DNA of 63,284 bases, counting the filler, from Reticulomyxa filosa (taxonomy: Eukaryota; Protista; Foraminifera), in assembly GCA_000512085.1 (NCBI GenBank). It is 19 parts of 19 records of this genome, joined end to end, with 100 filler letters (N's around TTAATTAATTAA, not from the genome) between each part and the next. Parts side by side here need not be neighbours in the genome. Positions count along the whole stretch, not along the records: positions 5,869 to 13,207 come from ASPP01003340.1; 18 more parts are not named here. One strand, written 5' to 3'. Positions within the stretch are counted from its first letter, which is position 1, and each line of letters begins with the position of its first letter. The notes under the pieces were generated by a model that ran no database searches, was not told where the DNA came from, and saw only the letters and a list, made by a program, of their open reading frames with translations. A program made the position numbers and the translations under genes. This document shows, in pieces, positions 5,769 through 14,059 of this stretch.

Positions 5769-6124
5769 NNNNNNNNNNNNNNNNNNNNNNNNNNNNNNNN
5801 NNNNNNNNNNNNTTAATTAATTAANNNNNNNNNNNNNNNNNNNNNNNNNNNNNNNNNNNNNNNNNNNNAAAAAGAAAAGAAAAAGATGAAAAATTTCAAC
5901 ATAAAATTTTGTATTTACCTTATTGATAGGTCAAAGTTACAAACTTAAATTGCTATATTATATAAAATATATTTTTTTTAATAGGTGGAAATGCCAAAAC
6001 ATGCAAGACCAAGGCCAAGACTAATATTAATTATATTTTTTTTATTTTTTATTTTATTATTTTATTTTATTATTTTATTTTATCATTTTATATTATGTAT
6101 ACAGCATAACACCTTTATAAAAAT

Positions 6125-6490
6125 TGCTGCCCGTGGACTCGTATTAACGAGTTGGCAAAAGACCGGCTAATAGGATAGCCTTGATCATAGACTAGTAACA
6201 TTGTCGTAAGTCTAGATACGAGATCTGGATGTTATCCAACCTTTGCCAGTTATAGTACCGCGCGGGCTAGTAACGACAATACTAGACCCTGTCAAAAGGG
6301 TAAAACCGACCAGTAGTGGCAAAGTGTTCTTATTAAATGCAAAAGTATCTAGTATGTGTACTCACAGCCTTTACCACTTAAAGGAAATATCACAGGACTT
6401 TTTGTCGTTTAAAGGATTGACACACATGCGGTCTGCTATTTTAATTATAACTCACAGCACTGATTGGCCCCAAAAGGGCGAAACCGCATA
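6125..6490 (+). ncRNA. Candidate structured RNA / ribozyme-containing element
   Basis: 151/360 G+C (about 42%) over 6121-6480 between very AT-rich flanks, many perfect short helices, no convincing ORF, and a hammerhead-shaped motif at the 3' end. Confidence 0.5.
6426..6489 (+). ncRNA. Type III hammerhead-ribozyme-like motif with variant core (CUGAUUG instead of CUGANGA)
   Basis: Stem III ATGCGGT 6426-6432 / ACCGCAT 6483-6489; GUC triplet 6431-6433; stem I TGCT 6434-6437 / AGCA 6456-6459; CTGATTG 6460-6466; stem II GCCC 6467-6470 / GGGC 6476-6479; GAAA 6480-6483. Confidence 0.6.
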
Positions 6491-6539
6491 TATTAAATAA
6501 AATTTTTATTATTTATTAAATTAAAATTTGTGTCATTGC

Positions 6540-6650
6540 TTCTCGAAAATTTTCAAAAATGAATAAAATATTCAAATTTTTTAAACAATTAGTAAAGATT
6601 TAATAAAAAACCAAAATGATATTAAAAACTACACGATTTGTAGATATTAT
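6540..6650 (-). repeat. Partial copy of the foldback element at 11340-11792
   Basis: The reverse complement aligns by eye to ~11428-11525 (TTTATTAAATCTTTACTAATT.TTTAAAAAATTT...GAAAATTTTC). Confidence 0.65.
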
Positions 6651-6669
6651 ATTATCTGCATTATATAAG

Positions 6670-6890
6670 TGTTTGTTTATGGGATATTCGAACTGATAAA
6701 CAGATTCAAGAATTAATGAACATATATTTGCTGTGTCATGTGTTGATTATTCGCCGTTTGCAATAAAGCGTAACCAAATTGGTCCAAACATAATATATTC
6801 TGGACCAGAAGATAACACAATTCGTTTTTGGGATACTCGACCAAATAAGACAGAATTATATATGATCAATGGGGCCAAAGAAGAAAAGGA
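6670..6890 (+). pseudogene. WD40 gene C-terminal remnant
   Basis: VCLWDIR...YSPF...SGPEDNTIRFWDTRPNKTELYMING, with frameshifts; matches the end of the 10096-11169 ORF. Confidence 0.75.
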
Positions 6891-7157
6891 ATAATTTTTT
6901 CTAATTTGTTTTAGATTAAAATTTTGTAAATACATGTGTTTAACCAAACACATTTGTTATTATTCGATGATCAAATGAATAAGTTTGATTATAAGGGTAA
7001 AATTCTGGCCAAAAAAAGTCTTCACTCTATTAATACTTATATTTATCCAATCTTTTGAAATTAACTTTTGTATGTGCATCAATACCAAAAAAAAAAAAGG
7101 AAAAAAAATCCTTTTTATAATAACAAAAAAAAACTTCAATCATTTCTACTTTTTGCA

Positions 7158-9203
7158 ATGTCGTCATTTAAAGCATATGTGAGCGATGGGACAAACGTAC
7201 ATACAATCATATTGCTAGAATTGACAATGAAGCATTTAAGACAACAAGTCCTCCAAGTTACTCGAACAATACATGCAGACGATGTATTAGTAAGAATCAT
7301 TGATAAAGATGGTAGACATGTTGAAACTGACAGAAGTGTGGTCTGTGCATTTGACAGTGAGAATGTGCATTTCATTGTCCAATTTCGAACAAGTTAATAC
7401 TAATCTCTATTAAAAATTTTAAAAAACATACAATAACAAAATAAAAAAAAAGGAGAGCTTGCAAGAAAAGAAAGAAGAAATAAAAGGATTACAATTATCA
7501 AATAAAGTAAGAAATCCATTAGTATTATTGACAGGAGCAATGAAATATCAGCAATCACAATATTTAGAAAATGTCAAACAAGATTTCCAGTTATTACAAA
7601 CACTGTTTCAATCTAAATTTAATTATCGAGTATTCAGTACTTACAATTCGCAAATTGTGAAGACCGAGTTTCTTACTTTAAATGATTTAAATGATTTCAT
7701 TTCAAAACAATGTTTAAATCTAACCAGTGTTTCGAATGATTATGATGGACTAATCTTTGTGTGGTGTGGATATGGAGGATTTGGAGTAAATGGAGATACA
7801 TTAATTACAAGTGATAACCAAAGCAAAATTTTCAAAGAAATTCAAAATAATTTTATAATGAAAACAGAATATTTTGCTGGAAAACCAAAAATTTTCATGA
7901 AAATATCCAATTCAATTGAAAATAATCGAAACAGTAAGATTAATGAAAAGAAGATACGATATAATCATGATACAGATACATTCACGATTATTGCAGATAC
8001 ATCAGAAAAATCAGTTATTAATTTCACAAAAATATTTTGTTATGAGATTGAAAATAATATGAATCAAAGTTTAGAACTTATTATCAAAAATGTAATTGGT
8101 CAAATATCAGGAAAAGAAATTGTACAATCTGTTTCAACTTCTCATTCGGATATTTATTTAATTCCAAGATCAACTAATAATAAAAATACTCCAGAAACTT
8201 TAGATTTTAGAAAACATTGGAACAGAAATTGGAGAAAAGCAAATGTAGAAGCAGCAAAAATAGTTGAAGAGATGATACAAAAAAATGAACAAGGATTGGT
8301 TGTTGTTGCTTTCGATACTCCTGAATGGAAAAAAACAAATGACAATTTTTTTATATTTCTTCATTCTCTTTTTATACATTGATAAACAAAGATAATGTGG
8401 TGAAAAAAGAATTTAAAAGATATTGGGTATATGCCATAAAAAGCAAGTTAATAATATTAAATGATATACGCATTGATGGTAATGTATATGTAGTTAATTG
8501 CGAACTTCAATGCAAACAAAATGCTAATATCACAACTCAACTATTTATCACAGAAAATGCTATTGTTGATCAATCTTTTTCACCTATTCAATGGAACACT
8601 AGAATACACTATGATATTCCTGCAAAACTTCAAGAGCTCGAAAATAAAGATGAAGAATGTTTAGAAAGATTACTTTATGATGATTCCGTTTTTTATTTAA
8701 AACAATATCTGCAAATTTGTATTGATACATTTGGACTTAATCATCCTTATGTTGTCATTGCTTATCGAATGCTTGGATTGACATATGATGATAAAGGACA
8801 ATATGACATTGCAATTGAGTTTTATGAAAAGGCATTAAAAATTATGGTAGATATTTTTGGTATCAATTATGTTTTAGTTGCTCAATTATATCACAACTTA
8901 GGAACATCTTATGACAATAAACGACAATATGGAAAGGCAATTAAACATTATGAAACTGCTTTAAAAATAAGGAAAGAAATATTTAGAAAAGGAGATGAAA
9001 GCATTGGAGATATCTGTTGGGATTTAGGATGTATATTCGAAATAATACAAAACAAGAAAACAGCATACAAGTATTATGAAGAGGCATGGAAAGTATACAA
9101 TAAAGTATATGGAGAATGGGATGAAGCAACATTACGATCAAAAGAGCAAATGCAATATTTGAATGAATCAGAAAATGATCGACTTTTTATTTCTACGTTT
9201 TAA
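7158..9203 (+). CDS. PB1/ubiquitin-like N-terminus + degenerate caspase-like (peptidase C14 fold) domain + TPR repeats; contains a frameshift
   Basis: NPLVLLTGAMKY...LENVKQDFQLLQTLF...YDGLIFVWCGYG...TLITSD...FAGKPKIF follows the caspase p20 pattern. The C-terminus has TPRs (AYRMLGLTYDDKGQYDIAIEFYEKALKI; YHNLGTSYDNKRQYGKAIKHYETALKIR). ORFs 7459-8382 and 8379-9203 overlap with no GT-AG intron between them, and the intron near 7393-7452 does not join in frame as written. Confidence 0.75.
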
Positions 9204-9820
9204 AATTGTCTAAACAAATTAAAAAATTTTCACAATGTTGTTCTACAAGTAATTTACATTCTTCCAAATACATTTTCCATATGGCCATTTTTATTATTAC
9301 TGCGTAATTTGTTTATCTTCTGAATATGATCGATTTTAGGGTTAGTATCCATTGTACATTTGCTAATAATAGATTCATTATGCCTATTTGAAACATAAGC
9401 TTTTATTTTTTATTCAACAATCCTTTTATGAGTTTGTACAGATGAAAATAATTTTAACATATTCGAAAGAGAAATTTAAGGTATATTTTTCCTCTGGTTC
9501 ATGTGTAAATAATAAGAGTAATAAATACAAAGTATATTTTTGCAGTGAAGCAAAACATAGCAATTGAATAGTAGTGTTTGATTATTTGTGATGTCACAGT
9601 TTGTTTTGTTTCACATTTTGTTGATGTTTGTAAAAGTTGTTGAAAACCTTTCACATTGAACTGACTTTTGAACAATTGATTTCTTCTCATTGAAAGGAAG
9701 TTCAACTTGTATTACCAAATTCTTTTGACAACCCCCTCATTGATTTTGAGAAAAAAGATCAAACAGTTTTTCATCTTATATCATCGTCTAAGAAGATCTC
9801 TCAGAGAAAAAACAAAAGAA

Positions 9821-11169
9821 ATGTCAATGCAACTATCATTGGTAAGCTTTTTTCAATCTTCCTGGGATTGATTGTCTTTATATTTTTGATTTTATTTGCA
9901 ATTGAGTCAGTTAGAAGAAGGAGAGATCCAAACAATTATCCGATATTGGATTAGAATATTGCATATTCAATTTGGATGGATCCAGGACTTTGACAGACTT
10001 ATTGCTGAATATGTTAAGTTTATTTGTTTTATTCAATGTAAATATTTATTTGTCTTATTCATATTTATAATTTAATACAGACAACTAACTTCTTCATGTT
10101 TGAGATATTTTATTCATCATCTAAATTACTCAAAACTTTCACTGGACATAAAAGTTGGGTAAATAGTATTGACTATTCAACACTCGATGGTAATCAATTC
10201 ATTTGTTCTGGATCAGGTGATAATACAATTCGCATATGGGATGTAGATACCGGCCAACAAATTCGATCACTCAATGGTCATTCATGTTCAGTGCTTTGTG
10301 CGAAATTTTCGCCATATCATTATTACAACAATCGTCGTAGTGTCATTTGTTCTTCGTCACATGACAGTACTATTTGTTTTTGGGATATCAAAGAAAATCA
10401 ACAATTACCAGTATTCAATGAACACAATGATAGTGTTTGTGACATTGTGTTTTCATCGTTTAATTATGGTCGATATATGTGCTCTGGATCTGAAGACAAT
10501 ACTATTCGTTTATGGGATGTTGAAACATCCAAATCATTACATGTTTTCAATGGACATGAAAGTGGTGTTTTGTGTGTGGATATTTCACCATTGCAAAGCA
10601 ATAACAATGGCAAGAATGATAATTGTGTTGGTATGATTGGCGGTAATGGATATACTATTTGCTCTGGATCATTGGATTATACCATCCGAATATGGGACAT
10701 TGAAACAACCAAACAGTCTATTGTGTTTGAAGGACATGAAGATTATGTGATGAGTGTAAGATATGGATCAAATGAATTAAGAAATATTGGCAGTGCAAAT
10801 ACAATACTATCTGGATCTGTTGATAAAAGTGTTTGTTTGTGGGATATTCGATCTGGTCAACAAATTCAAGTATTCAATAAACATACAGTTTGTGTGAATG
10901 CTGTTGAATATTCACCATTTATTGTAAATAATATTGAGATTGGAGATAATTCAAATGTGATATGTTCTGGATCAGAAGATAATACAATTCGATTTTGGGA
11001 TATTCGATTAAATAAGATTGAATTATATGTGATCAATGGAAGTAATGAATGTGATGGAATAAGATGTCTTAAATTTCTACAATTAAAAAAGAATAGAAAA
11101 AGTAATAATGATAGTTTTATTTGTTTGTGTTATGGCTCAAACAAGGGTCTGATTCAAATTTGTGGATAG
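9821..11169 (+). CDS. WD40-repeat (G-beta-like) protein, multi-exon; start uncertain
   Basis: The main exon 10081-11169 has about six GH...WD repeats (GHKSWVNSIDYS...SGSGDNTIRIWD etc.). The upstream exon EEGEIQTIIRYWIRILHIQFGWIQDFD matches the paralogs at 5357 and ~430-545. Confidence 0.92.
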
Positions 11170-11339
11170 TGCCATTTTCGCAGTAAAAAATTTGTTCAAG
11201 TTGTTTGATTCTTTTTGATTAAATTGAACGAAACAAGCTTCTTTCATTAAACTTTCGGTTTGCAATTGTCCAGAAGTTATTGCCACATCAAAAAAAATTA
11301 TATAGAAAAATAAAGTTTACGCAAAAATTAATACAATAG

Positions 11340-11792
11340 AATGCAAAGTAAAGTTGACACATAAAACAGCACATTATATATAATTGATTTTCTTCATGAA
11401 AAGACAACATCAGACTTAATTTTTAAAAAATATCTACGATAGTATATTTTTTAAATATTATTTTCGTTTTTTATTAAATCTTTACTAATTATTTAAAAAA
11501 TTTTATTTTCGAAAATTTTCTAGAAAAAGTTGACGATTGTGACTGTGTCGTGACAATGAAATTTGCAAACTTTTTTAAGCATTTTCAGAAAGTGCTAAAT
11601 GCGTAATCATTTAAAAAAAATATAAATAATTAAAAAACTTGAATATCGAACTATACTTAGCTAAAAAAAAATGATATTAAAAATTACAATATTAGTATAT
11701 ATTTTTTAAAAAAGTCAAAATGCTATTTTTTCGTTAAGAAAATCAATTATCTATATAATGTGCAGTTTTATATATCAACTTTACTTTGCATT
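11340..11792. mobile_element. Foldback / MITE-like element with ~125-nt imperfect terminal inverted repeats
   Basis: The left arm AATGCAAAGTAAAGTTGACACATAAAACAGCACATTATATATAATTGATTTTCTT... is the near reverse complement of the right arm ...AAGAAAATCAATTATCTATATAATGTGCAGTTTTATATATCAACTTTACTTTGCATT. No ORF. No target-site duplication identified. Confidence 0.65.
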
Positions 11793-14059
11793 ATACTTAT
11801 ATAATTTCGTCATTATTTTCTAAATTTTTAGTACAAATTTGTTTAATTGTTCATTTTTTTTTAATATGTCGATATATTGTTGCAACGTTTGAGTTAATTT
11901 ATTATAATTAATTTCCAACAATCGTATTTGTTCAAGTTAGTAACTATTATCATTCTGTAACTTAATAATTTCTATTTTGTTCTTCATTTGTACGTCCTTT
12001 TAGTCCGATACAATCTAAATTTTCGTTTTGGTCAATTTCATCTTGATTATATAATGAAAATTGTTATTTGTGCTTTTTTAAAGACAATCACTTTAAGATA
12101 TATTATCACTTTGGATTATTGTTTTTCTTGTCGATCTGATTGTCATTCTCGAGCTCACTATTATTAGTATTGTTAATGCCGAATATATCTTTATTTCTTT
12201 AAGATATCGTTTATATCATTTTTTTTCTTTATTCAATCAAACTAAAGTTAATCGCCATTTTGTTTGTAGCCTTTTGTTTAGTGACATTATATTATTATTG
12301 TTATCATATACTTAAAATTTAATACTTATTCTAATTTTACATTTTACTTAATATCTTTCATTGATCTTTTTTTCATCATTATTGTGTTTACATTTGTATC
12401 TTGTACAATTTTGCATTGTAAATGTACAACTTGCGAATTTCCAATTTGTAATTTTTTACTTACACAATCAATACTAATTTCATTTTCGATCTTTTTTGGA
12501 ATAATAATTCCATTTATAATGTTTCAGCTATAGTCACTAGTATGTATTTTTTTAAATGTATTAATATGCAAAAACTATAATTATTTAATTTTGTAAATAT
12601 TCTTTTAAATTTTCTAAGATCTCACTAATTATAATATTTAGCTTAAATATAAATTTTTATGTAATTATTACATCTACAAATTTTCTTCAATTGTTATATG
12701 GCAAAATTTTGTATACGTATTTGAATAAAACAACGTGCATGTACACATTGTATACAATATCATAAAGCATTCAAGATGCCAAAGCAACAGATGATAAATC
12801 ACAACTTCCACATGACCAAACGCAAAGTCAGTATCGAGGGCTAAGTACCATTGGTCATATTTTAACGAAAAAATAATACTATTATTAAATATTGATTTTA
12901 GAGCATATATTCAAATATTGTAATCATCACGGCTTCGTTCTGACGTAGGAGTATCTCTACAAAATACTCAATTTTAAAATGTAAATAAGAATATTTGAAA
13001 CAATTAAAATATTTATCTAGAGGGAGTTATATTTGTTAATCTGATGTCATTTTGATGCCACGATCTGAAATAACATCACACTCCTGAGTGCACGTTCTTG
13101 AAGGATTATGTAATAAAAATGGCGTCTTTTTGTAGCCACATGTATTGGAGACACGACAATTTTGTGATTTATTTCACAATTGATAAACAATAAAGAAAAA
13201 AAAAAAANNNNNNNNNNNNNNNNNNNNNNNNNNNNNNNNNNNNNNNNNNNNTTAATTAATTAANNNNNNNNNNNNNNNNNNNNNNNNNNNNNNNNNNNNN
13301 NNNNNNNCTTAGACATTGCCAATTAAATATGCAATAACTAGCATTAAAAAAATTATAATAAGAATGTTTTCACCAAAAACCATTTGGAATATAGAATTAA
13401 CTTGTAATATACGTGATATATTCAATTTTTAACAAATTTTTCTTCTTTTTATCTCAAATGTCTTTTTCTTTTACATCATTTCTTTAATCTTAAAAGAATG
13501 ACTACTTCAATACAACAAGCATTAGTAGGTCTCAATTTAATCTTGAGAAACTACTTGCCTTTAGGTTATTATTATCTGTAATTGTGATTAATAAAATCAA
13601 TTTAATACATATGCCAATATTGCTTGAAAAAAAAACTAAAATTTGAAAAATATTGAATTTTTGGAATTTAAAATCTTTATGTTGCTTGTGGAAGTAAATG
13701 AAAAATTCAAAGTAATTAGATTCAAGATTTGAGTTTATCGCTATCACGAAATCAACTTTTATACGCAAAGCAGCTTAAAAGCTTTGCGTTTGAGTTTTTC
13801 AAAAAGAAGTTTCATTTGTATTAGTGTTTATATTCTTTGTAATTGATATGCATTTCTGCTTTCTCAAAAGTATTAAATATCAAATTCAATTTTAGTACAA
13901 ATATCTTATTAAAAGGGTACAAAAATATTAGGAAAGACCTTTTTTTCTTAAATGGCTAAAATTCCAAAAAATATGTCAAACAACAATCCAAAGAATAAAC
14001 TTAATAAATTATAAAATGAAAATCAAAACAAAACTTCATTCATCATATCCCCAAACACG

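Follow-up and report, generated by a model that had tools for sequence, protein, structure and literature searches.

A sub-threshold hammerhead-like motif with a non-canonical core at the edge of a GC-rich island in the foraminifer Reticulomyxa filosa

Introduction

Does a short sequence in the genome of the foraminifer Reticulomyxa filosa, which has the shape of a type III hammerhead ribozyme and two unusual bases in its catalytic core, descend from a self-cleaving RNA, might it still cleave, or does it only look like one? The motif lies on ASPP01003340.1 (assembly GCA_000512085.1), a contig of 7,339 bp that makes up positions 5869-13207 of the window, by which we mean the whole stretch of 63,284 nt that was analysed and along which all positions below are counted. 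The R. filosa assembly is made up of 50,809 scaffolds that total 101.9 Mb, of which repeats account for 30.5% (PMC13746701). Annotation of the contig is limited to two genes, a spliced TPR gene (7309-9203) and a WD40 gene, and has nothing at the motif. Type III hammerhead families are known in plants, and type I satellites have been reported from protists (PMC6155905); in the literature that we searched there is no report of hammerheads in Rhizaria or foraminifera. The original prediction offered two readings of the motif, an inactivated copy of a ribozyme-bearing repeat family or a natural core variant, and we asked how far each of them, and a resemblance of some other origin, agrees with the evidence.

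Results

A three-way junction with two non-canonical core bases

The elements of the motif are collected in Table 1. The order and spacing originally described for its three stems, the GUC triplet, CUGA and GAAA are exact, base for base. Stems I and II are capped by loops and stem III is open, in the order III-H17-I-core-II-GAAA-III, which is the type III topology. All 15 stem pairs are Watson-Crick, with no G-U pair among them, and stem III accounts for seven, including U16.1-A15.1. Canonical bases occupy 13 of the 15 core positions (C3, U4, G5, A6 and U7 included), and the semi-conserved G16.2, U1.1-A2.1, G10.1-C11.1 and C15.2 are all present. Set against the conserved catalytic core (C3 U4 G5 A6 N7 G8 A9, G12 A13 A14, A15.1-U16.1 and H17), the motif departs at positions 8 and 9 only, where the UG in place of GA that had been pointed out is confirmed as U6465 (for G8) and G6466 (for A9). 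By inspection, no other register of the motif restores a canonical core.

Table 1. Features of the motif and of the island that contains it (positions in the window)
Feature	Position	Strand	Basis or remark
Hammerhead type III-shaped motif, whole	6426-6489	+	Sequence, fold, RF00008 model positions 1-54 of 54
Stem III, 5' arm, AUGCGGU	6426-6432	+	Sequence, covariance model alignment
GUC triplet	6431-6433	+	Sequence; predicted scissile bond after C6433
Stem I, UGCU/AGCA, 4 bp	6434-6437 / 6456-6459	+	Sequence
Loop I, 18 nt, AU-rich, AUUUUAAUUAUAACUCAC	6438-6455	+	Sequence
Core strand, CUGAUUG	6460-6466	+	Sequence, covariance model alignment, comparison with metagenomic hammerheads
Stem II, GCCC/GGGC, 4 bp, G10.1-C11.1	6467-6470 / 6476-6479	+	Sequence, covariance model alignment
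Loop II, CAAAA	6471-6475	+	Sequence
GAAA (G12, A13, A14, A15.1)	6480-6483	+	Sequence, covariance model alignment
Stem III, 3' arm, ACCGCAU	6483-6489	+	Sequence, covariance model alignment
GC-rich island, 41% GC, GC-richest part of contig; motif is its 3' end	6127-6489		Composition
Open frame, 94 codons stop to stop, spans motif	6216-6500	+	Without credible protein relatives

The minimum-free-energy fold of the 64-nt motif is the three-way junction itself (-16.5 kcal/mol, z = -1.58), and the junction is kept when the motif is folded within 401 nt of context. The paired and core parts have a GC content of about 57%, as against 17% in loop I. The UUUU of loop I could pair with the AAAA of loop II, although the lengths of stem I and loop I are atypical beside real relatives.

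The core is not expected to cleave

Hammerhead cleavage uses G12 as general base and is proposed to use the 2'-OH of G8 as general acid, and C3 is the base with which G8 pairs (PMC6155905); in the R. filosa motif C3 faces U8. When every single and double mutant of a type III hammerhead was mapped, none at the catalytic guanosines had high activity, and the sole compensating second mutation was a C3/G8 swap (PMC9901934). Because the catalytic G tolerates no change except that swap, self-cleavage after C6433 would not be expected, judging from the published mutagenesis.

Rare natural variants of the hammerhead core do exist, and some of them cleave (PMC3088659). Those described by Perreault et al. 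are a U3/A8 covariation, A6C, an insertion after A6, U13a, U15.1-A16.1 and U10.1-U11.1, and neither G8U nor A9G is among them (PMC3088659). The reading of the motif as a natural core variant is accordingly disfavoured, both by this list and by the intolerance of the catalytic G in the mutant map (PMC9901934).

Similarity to the hammerhead family is sub-threshold and borderline against chance

An Rfam hammerhead search had been named as a check on the motif, and in short stretches the model Hammerhead_3 (RF00008) does align with it end to end and in the register first proposed, yet below threshold: its 26.9 bits fall 21.6 short of the gathering score of 48.5. The E-values are 2.3e-4 with 86 nt searched and 1.2e-3 with 441 nt searched, counted, like all Rfam E-values here, across all 4227 families. 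The match appears only in these short-stretch searches, where filters are laxer, and a routine Rfam scan of the whole 7.3-kb contig at E <= 10 left the hammerhead unreported. The alignment has a 13-nt insertion in loop I and a 3-nt deletion in loop II, with non-pair marks in stem I and at the C3/G8 pair of the core. On core and on score alike, then, the motif falls outside the hammerhead class.

Arithmetic from the E-values gives a chance rate of about 6.4e-10 per nt for Hammerhead_3 alone. For the contig, the chance expectation is about 5e-6 for this one family and about 0.02 over all Rfam families; with search size it grows to about 0.07 over the 101.9 Mb of the assembly, about 0.2 over 320 Mb and about 2 in a scan of 3.3 Gb, and it rises several-fold if every hammerhead topology is counted. 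Two descriptor searches of simulated sequence bracket that rate. The loose one, which allows up to two mismatches over nine core positions and requires stems of at least 4, 4 and 7 bp, matches about 1.3 times per Mb per strand, so that motifs of merely hammerhead shape are common. The strict one allows up to two mismatches over 20 consensus positions; 180 Mb of random sequence contained a single match with 4 bp or more in stem III and none with at least 7 bp, which extrapolates to about 0.06 per assembly and agrees with Infernal. The R. filosa motif is thus far above the casual look-alike and only a few bits over the best noise for a genome of such size. Its resemblance to a hammerhead goes beyond chance within the contig; at the scale of the genome or of the whole scan the case is borderline, and not clearly beyond chance. 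The noise level of the loose descriptor can be seen on the contig itself, where a second match (window 9963-10045, plus strand) has two core mismatches and a stem III of 4 bp.

Comparison with metagenomic hammerheads

We scanned metagenomes with a pattern consisting of the 3' half of the motif with positions 7-9 left free (CACTGANNNGCCCC-loop-GGGCGAAACC). The 27 matches, on 23 metagenomic contigs, read TGA at positions 7-9 in 25 cases and CGA in the other two, and none has a core other than NGA. Type III hammerheads from this set (L006-L010, L013, L016, L020, L021), probably phage or bacterial, have the form GGUCUGC-stem I-GCACUGAUGAGCCCC-loop-GGGCGAAACC, and lie on contigs of 39-69% GC, often several per contig.

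The R. filosa motif is identical to these hammerheads at GGUCUGC, GCACUGAU, GCCCC, GGGCGAAACC and the stem III pairs, and departs from them at positions 8 and 9 (UGA or CGA at 7-9 in the metagenomic set), in loop II, and in distal stem I, which is AU-rich and unpaired. Where the metagenomic hammerheads have a covarying stem I of 6-7 bp and loops of 4-6 nt, the motif has 4 bp and an 18-nt loop. Most of the identity is imposed by the search pattern, and the part that is not imposed, stem I and loop I, is the part that diverges. Being perfect where the descriptor demands it and atypical where it is unconstrained is the usual pattern of a best-of-noise match. A covariance model built from nine of the metagenomic hammerheads (R1) gives the motif 45.4 bits, as against 9.8 for the next best match in 61 kb, a score that is not independent evidence because the pattern that retrieved the training sequences was taken from the motif. 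Beyond the motif, the metagenomic contigs have no similarity to the R. filosa island.

Compared with RF00008 (clan CL00010), the motif shares the topology, GUC, the CUGA U-turn, GAAA, A15.1-U16.1, G10.1-C11.1, U1.1-A2.1 and C15.2-G16.2; it is unlike the family in U8, G9, its score below gathering, and the 4-bp stem I with its 18-nt loop.

Some of the metagenomic contigs are of interest in their own right. L019 carries three near-identical canonical type III hammerheads (507-535, 1118-1146 and 1787-1815), and L009, L017 and L021 have several each; the spacing, measurable in L019 and L009, is about 600-770 nt. A GC hairpin precedes each of these hammerheads and a Shine-Dalgarno-like sequence follows, with an ATG next in most copies, and they probably sit between phage genes.

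The GC-rich island

The motif ends exactly at the boundary of a sharply bounded, GC-rich island of about 365 bp. GC content is 41% at 6100-6490 and drops to 17% before it (5869-6099) and 15% after it (6491-6660), and on the same contig the TPR gene has 27% and the WD40 gene 32%. Elsewhere in R. filosa (54 kb of other contigs), most islands that reach 38% GC or more turn out to be exons of ordinary genes, which have 40-56% GC. One such unannotated GC island, on ASPP01009421.1 (L005:6545-6724, plus strand), holds a divergent U1 snRNA gene, which scores 47.8 bits against RF00003, below the gathering threshold of 69.5 (E = 5.9e-9), and has a TATA-like CTATATA about 30 nt upstream. A sub-threshold and unannotated U1 snRNA implies that R. 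filosa non-coding RNA genes can be divergent and missing from the annotation. Taken together, the exon-like islands and the one U1 island mean that composition marks an island as functional or recently inserted, and does not say which.

Seven distinct perfect hairpins of 5-6 bp lie at 6137-6384 (P about 0.004 against shuffles); between 0 and 12 such hairpins were counted in real R. filosa coding controls. The island context folds with z-scores of about -2.0 (plus strand) and -2.2 (minus strand). Apart from Hammerhead_3 and two noise matches, Rfam reports nothing for the island at E <= 10, and a tRNA scan found none. Conserved boxes of RNase P/MRP, SRP and U3 RNAs were compared by eye and were unconvincing. 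An internal duplication, with a second degenerate hammerhead about 170 nt upstream, was considered and rejected (alignment score 27, against 25 +/- 4 for shuffles), as was an origin from phage, plasmid or vector, for which blastn gave no match except a 31-nt chance one.

The open frame that spans the motif is probably not coding. Its 85-aa island product has no Pfam domain, a word search with it returned nothing at E <= 1, the exact island products are not recorded as called genes, and a locus search of metagenomes found no relative of the island. A HMMER search of 1.84 billion representatives gave a sole match, P0121 (E = 2e-7), which we rejected as a homologue since its score is inflated by repeats: it is the sum of five weak matches of 33 residues, of about 22-24 bits each, none significant singly. 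P0121 itself, from a 40-kb contig (ENA ERZ26695794), is a 984-aa "protein" of tandem repeats of about 61 aa and is probably a translated satellite. Codon-usage log-likelihoods did not discriminate between frames, even on the known WD40 gene. In sum, the island is exon-like in composition and rich in hairpins, and no relatives of it were found.

Search for other copies and for a mobile element

Neither the motif nor the island was found a second time within ASPP01003340.1, nor did blastn or an unfiltered hammerhead covariance model find either of them in eight other R. filosa contigs (115 kb); an absence from 115 kb rules out only a very abundant family, with upwards of about 2,600 copies in the assembly. 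The metagenomes likewise gave no copy of motif or island. The notion of an inactivated copy from a ribozyme-bearing repeat family finds no support in the contig, the 115 kb or the metagenomes, although a low-copy family would be compatible with these searches.

Isolated hammerheads of plants usually belong to solo LTRs, blocks 300-400 bp long (PMC4918200), and a non-coding block of about 300-400 bp with a type III hammerhead is what the island, at about 365 bp, resembles. It is unlike plant retrozymes in its foraminiferal host, and in that no second LTR, PBS, PPT or multi-copy family was found. LTR-type retrozymes carry the hammerhead in direct repeats of about 300-400 bp, one on either side of a non-coding stretch of 300-600 bp; here no direct repeat of the island occurs in the 6.7 kb downstream, and upstream the contig extends for only about 260 nt. 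A TG (6125-6126) and a CA (6487-6488) are present, and by inspection the 4-mers that flank them differ (AAAT and TATA), a comparison weakened by the AT-rich flanks. No PBS-like sequence was seen 3' of the motif, again by inspection.

Discussion

What the motif is can be put as a choice between chance and ancestry, with function a further possibility. The explanation we lean towards, with about as much doubt as confidence, is that it is a non-cleaving hammerhead look-alike, placed at the 3' border of a GC-rich island that carries no annotation. A three-way junction would here match most of the type III consensus by coincidence, and with U8 and G9 it would have neither G8, the source of the general-acid 2'-OH and the partner of C3, nor A9, and would not cleave after C6433; we infer that the resemblance arose without hammerhead ancestry. 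We favour chance because the score is sub-threshold, because of the look-elsewhere arithmetic and because the match has the best-of-noise pattern, and further because no copy was found and the literature searched reports no hammerhead in Rhizaria. Chance resemblance, which neither reading in the original prediction considered, is at least as likely as those two. Several observations weigh against a look-alike: an expectation of about 0.02 in the contig and only about 0.07 per assembly is small, all but two of the 15 core positions are canonical and every one of the 15 stem pairs is intact, the 3' half is that of bona fide hammerheads save at positions 8, 9 and loop II, and the motif's end coincides with the island boundary. 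GC-rich stems with an AT-rich loop I are also what one might expect from selection for RNA structure in an AT-biased genome. We regard it as possible, if somewhat doubtful, that the motif descends from a genuine type III hammerhead, in decayed and inactive form, and that the island of about 365 bp is the remnant of a mobile or foreign element, for example a retrozyme-type block like a solo LTR or a laterally acquired fragment, in which the two-base change at G8 and A9 ended catalysis. The full-length RF00008 alignment at about 0.07 chance matches per assembly, the near-identity to metagenomic hammerheads except at positions 8 and 9, in loop II and in the distal part of stem I, the intact stems, the sharp GC boundaries, which fit a recent insertion, and an island size near that of plant solo-LTR blocks of 300-400 bp (PMC4918200) all point this way, as does the R1 score of 45.4 bits against 9.8 for the next best, though that model is biased by its candidate-derived pattern. 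Against it, no second copy turned up in the contig, in the 115 kb from elsewhere in R. filosa or in the metagenomes; nor does inspection show a direct-repeat partner, a matching 4-bp target-site duplication around TG...CA, or a PBS-like sequence. Type III families are known from plants and not from protists (PMC6155905), stem I and loop I differ from what genuine type III hammerheads have, and neutral drift in a 27% GC genome should have damaged the stems, in which no damage is seen.

It is also conceivable, although we think it improbable, that the island represents a structured RNA gene that has escaped recognition, or else a conserved exon, whether non-coding or coding, and that the junction is a structural domain with a role other than cleavage. 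Its GC content of 41%, against 27-32% in the neighbouring protein genes, its seven perfect hairpins (P about 0.004), the GC-rich stems and AT-rich loop of the motif, and the precedent of a divergent U1 snRNA in another unannotated R. filosa GC island would suit such a role. Yet Hammerhead_3 and two noise matches are all that Rfam returns at E <= 10, the folding z-scores are modest (-2.0 and -2.2), coding controls reach 0-12 hairpins, and the search for homologues in which covariation could be seen found none. Least credible to us, and very improbable, is an active natural hammerhead that tolerates U8/G9, possibly through the UUUU-AAAA contact between loops I and II and perhaps only under some conditions. 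That natural core variants exist, some of them cleaving (PMC3088659), and that the stems, and the core at its remaining 13 positions, are undamaged speaks for it; the documented variants, however, include neither G8U nor A9G (PMC3088659), exhaustive double mutagenesis rescues the catalytic G only by the C3/G8 swap, whereas here C3 is opposite U8 (PMC9901934), and shifted registers give no canonical core. The interpretation first put forward is thus partly supported: the hammerhead likeness is now measured, and both readings built on it stay unproven.

The consequences differ with the explanation. If intact relatives exist in the R. filosa genome, theirs would be the first hammerhead-bearing element reported in Rhizaria and a type III example outside plants, with a bearing on the spread of ribozyme-carrying retroelements; that the motif is a dead copy from such an undescribed foraminiferal lineage, with intact relatives elsewhere in the genome, seems to us tenable and rather less than probable. 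A U8/G9 core that cleaves would contradict the exhaustive mutagenesis of the catalytic G8, and we would be greatly surprised by an undescribed foraminiferal lineage in which this core is tolerated and cleaves. For the present the motif serves chiefly as a cautionary case, in which 13 of 15 core positions and perfect stems go together with a score 21.6 bits below threshold and a chance occurrence of about once per few gigabases. Default Rfam filters, for their part, can hide a full-length sub-threshold match that a short-range scan reveals.

Other features of the contig

The TPR gene, annotated as a spliced 549-aa product, has two long ORFs (7459-8382 and 8379-9203) in different frames with a 4-nt overlap. 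The WD40 ORF (10096-11169) has more than 1,700 relatives; among the best 120, the 119 whose source is named are all R. filosa proteins, at 61-70% identity, the first being the query itself. Just downstream of the GC island, a frame-shifted WD40 fragment (6663-6714 and 6785-6872, extending to about 6950) has 85-87% DNA identity to 10823-11039, the 3' part of the intact WD40 gene, and probably represents either a pseudogene or a partial duplication of local origin. Downstream of the WD40 gene, two inverted repeats of about 85 nt (11325-11410 and 11720-11807), 83-84% complementary, enclose about 310 nt of AT-rich DNA, and the pair (11325-11807) has the form of a foldback or MITE-like element. An AT-rich stretch of 55 nt beside the island (6574-6628) recurs inverted at 11449-11503, 4.8 kb away and just past the WD40 gene, with 93% identity, and the overlapping 6608-6648 recurs in direct orientation at 11663-11703 (83%), which suggests a small dispersed repeat or a local rearrangement.
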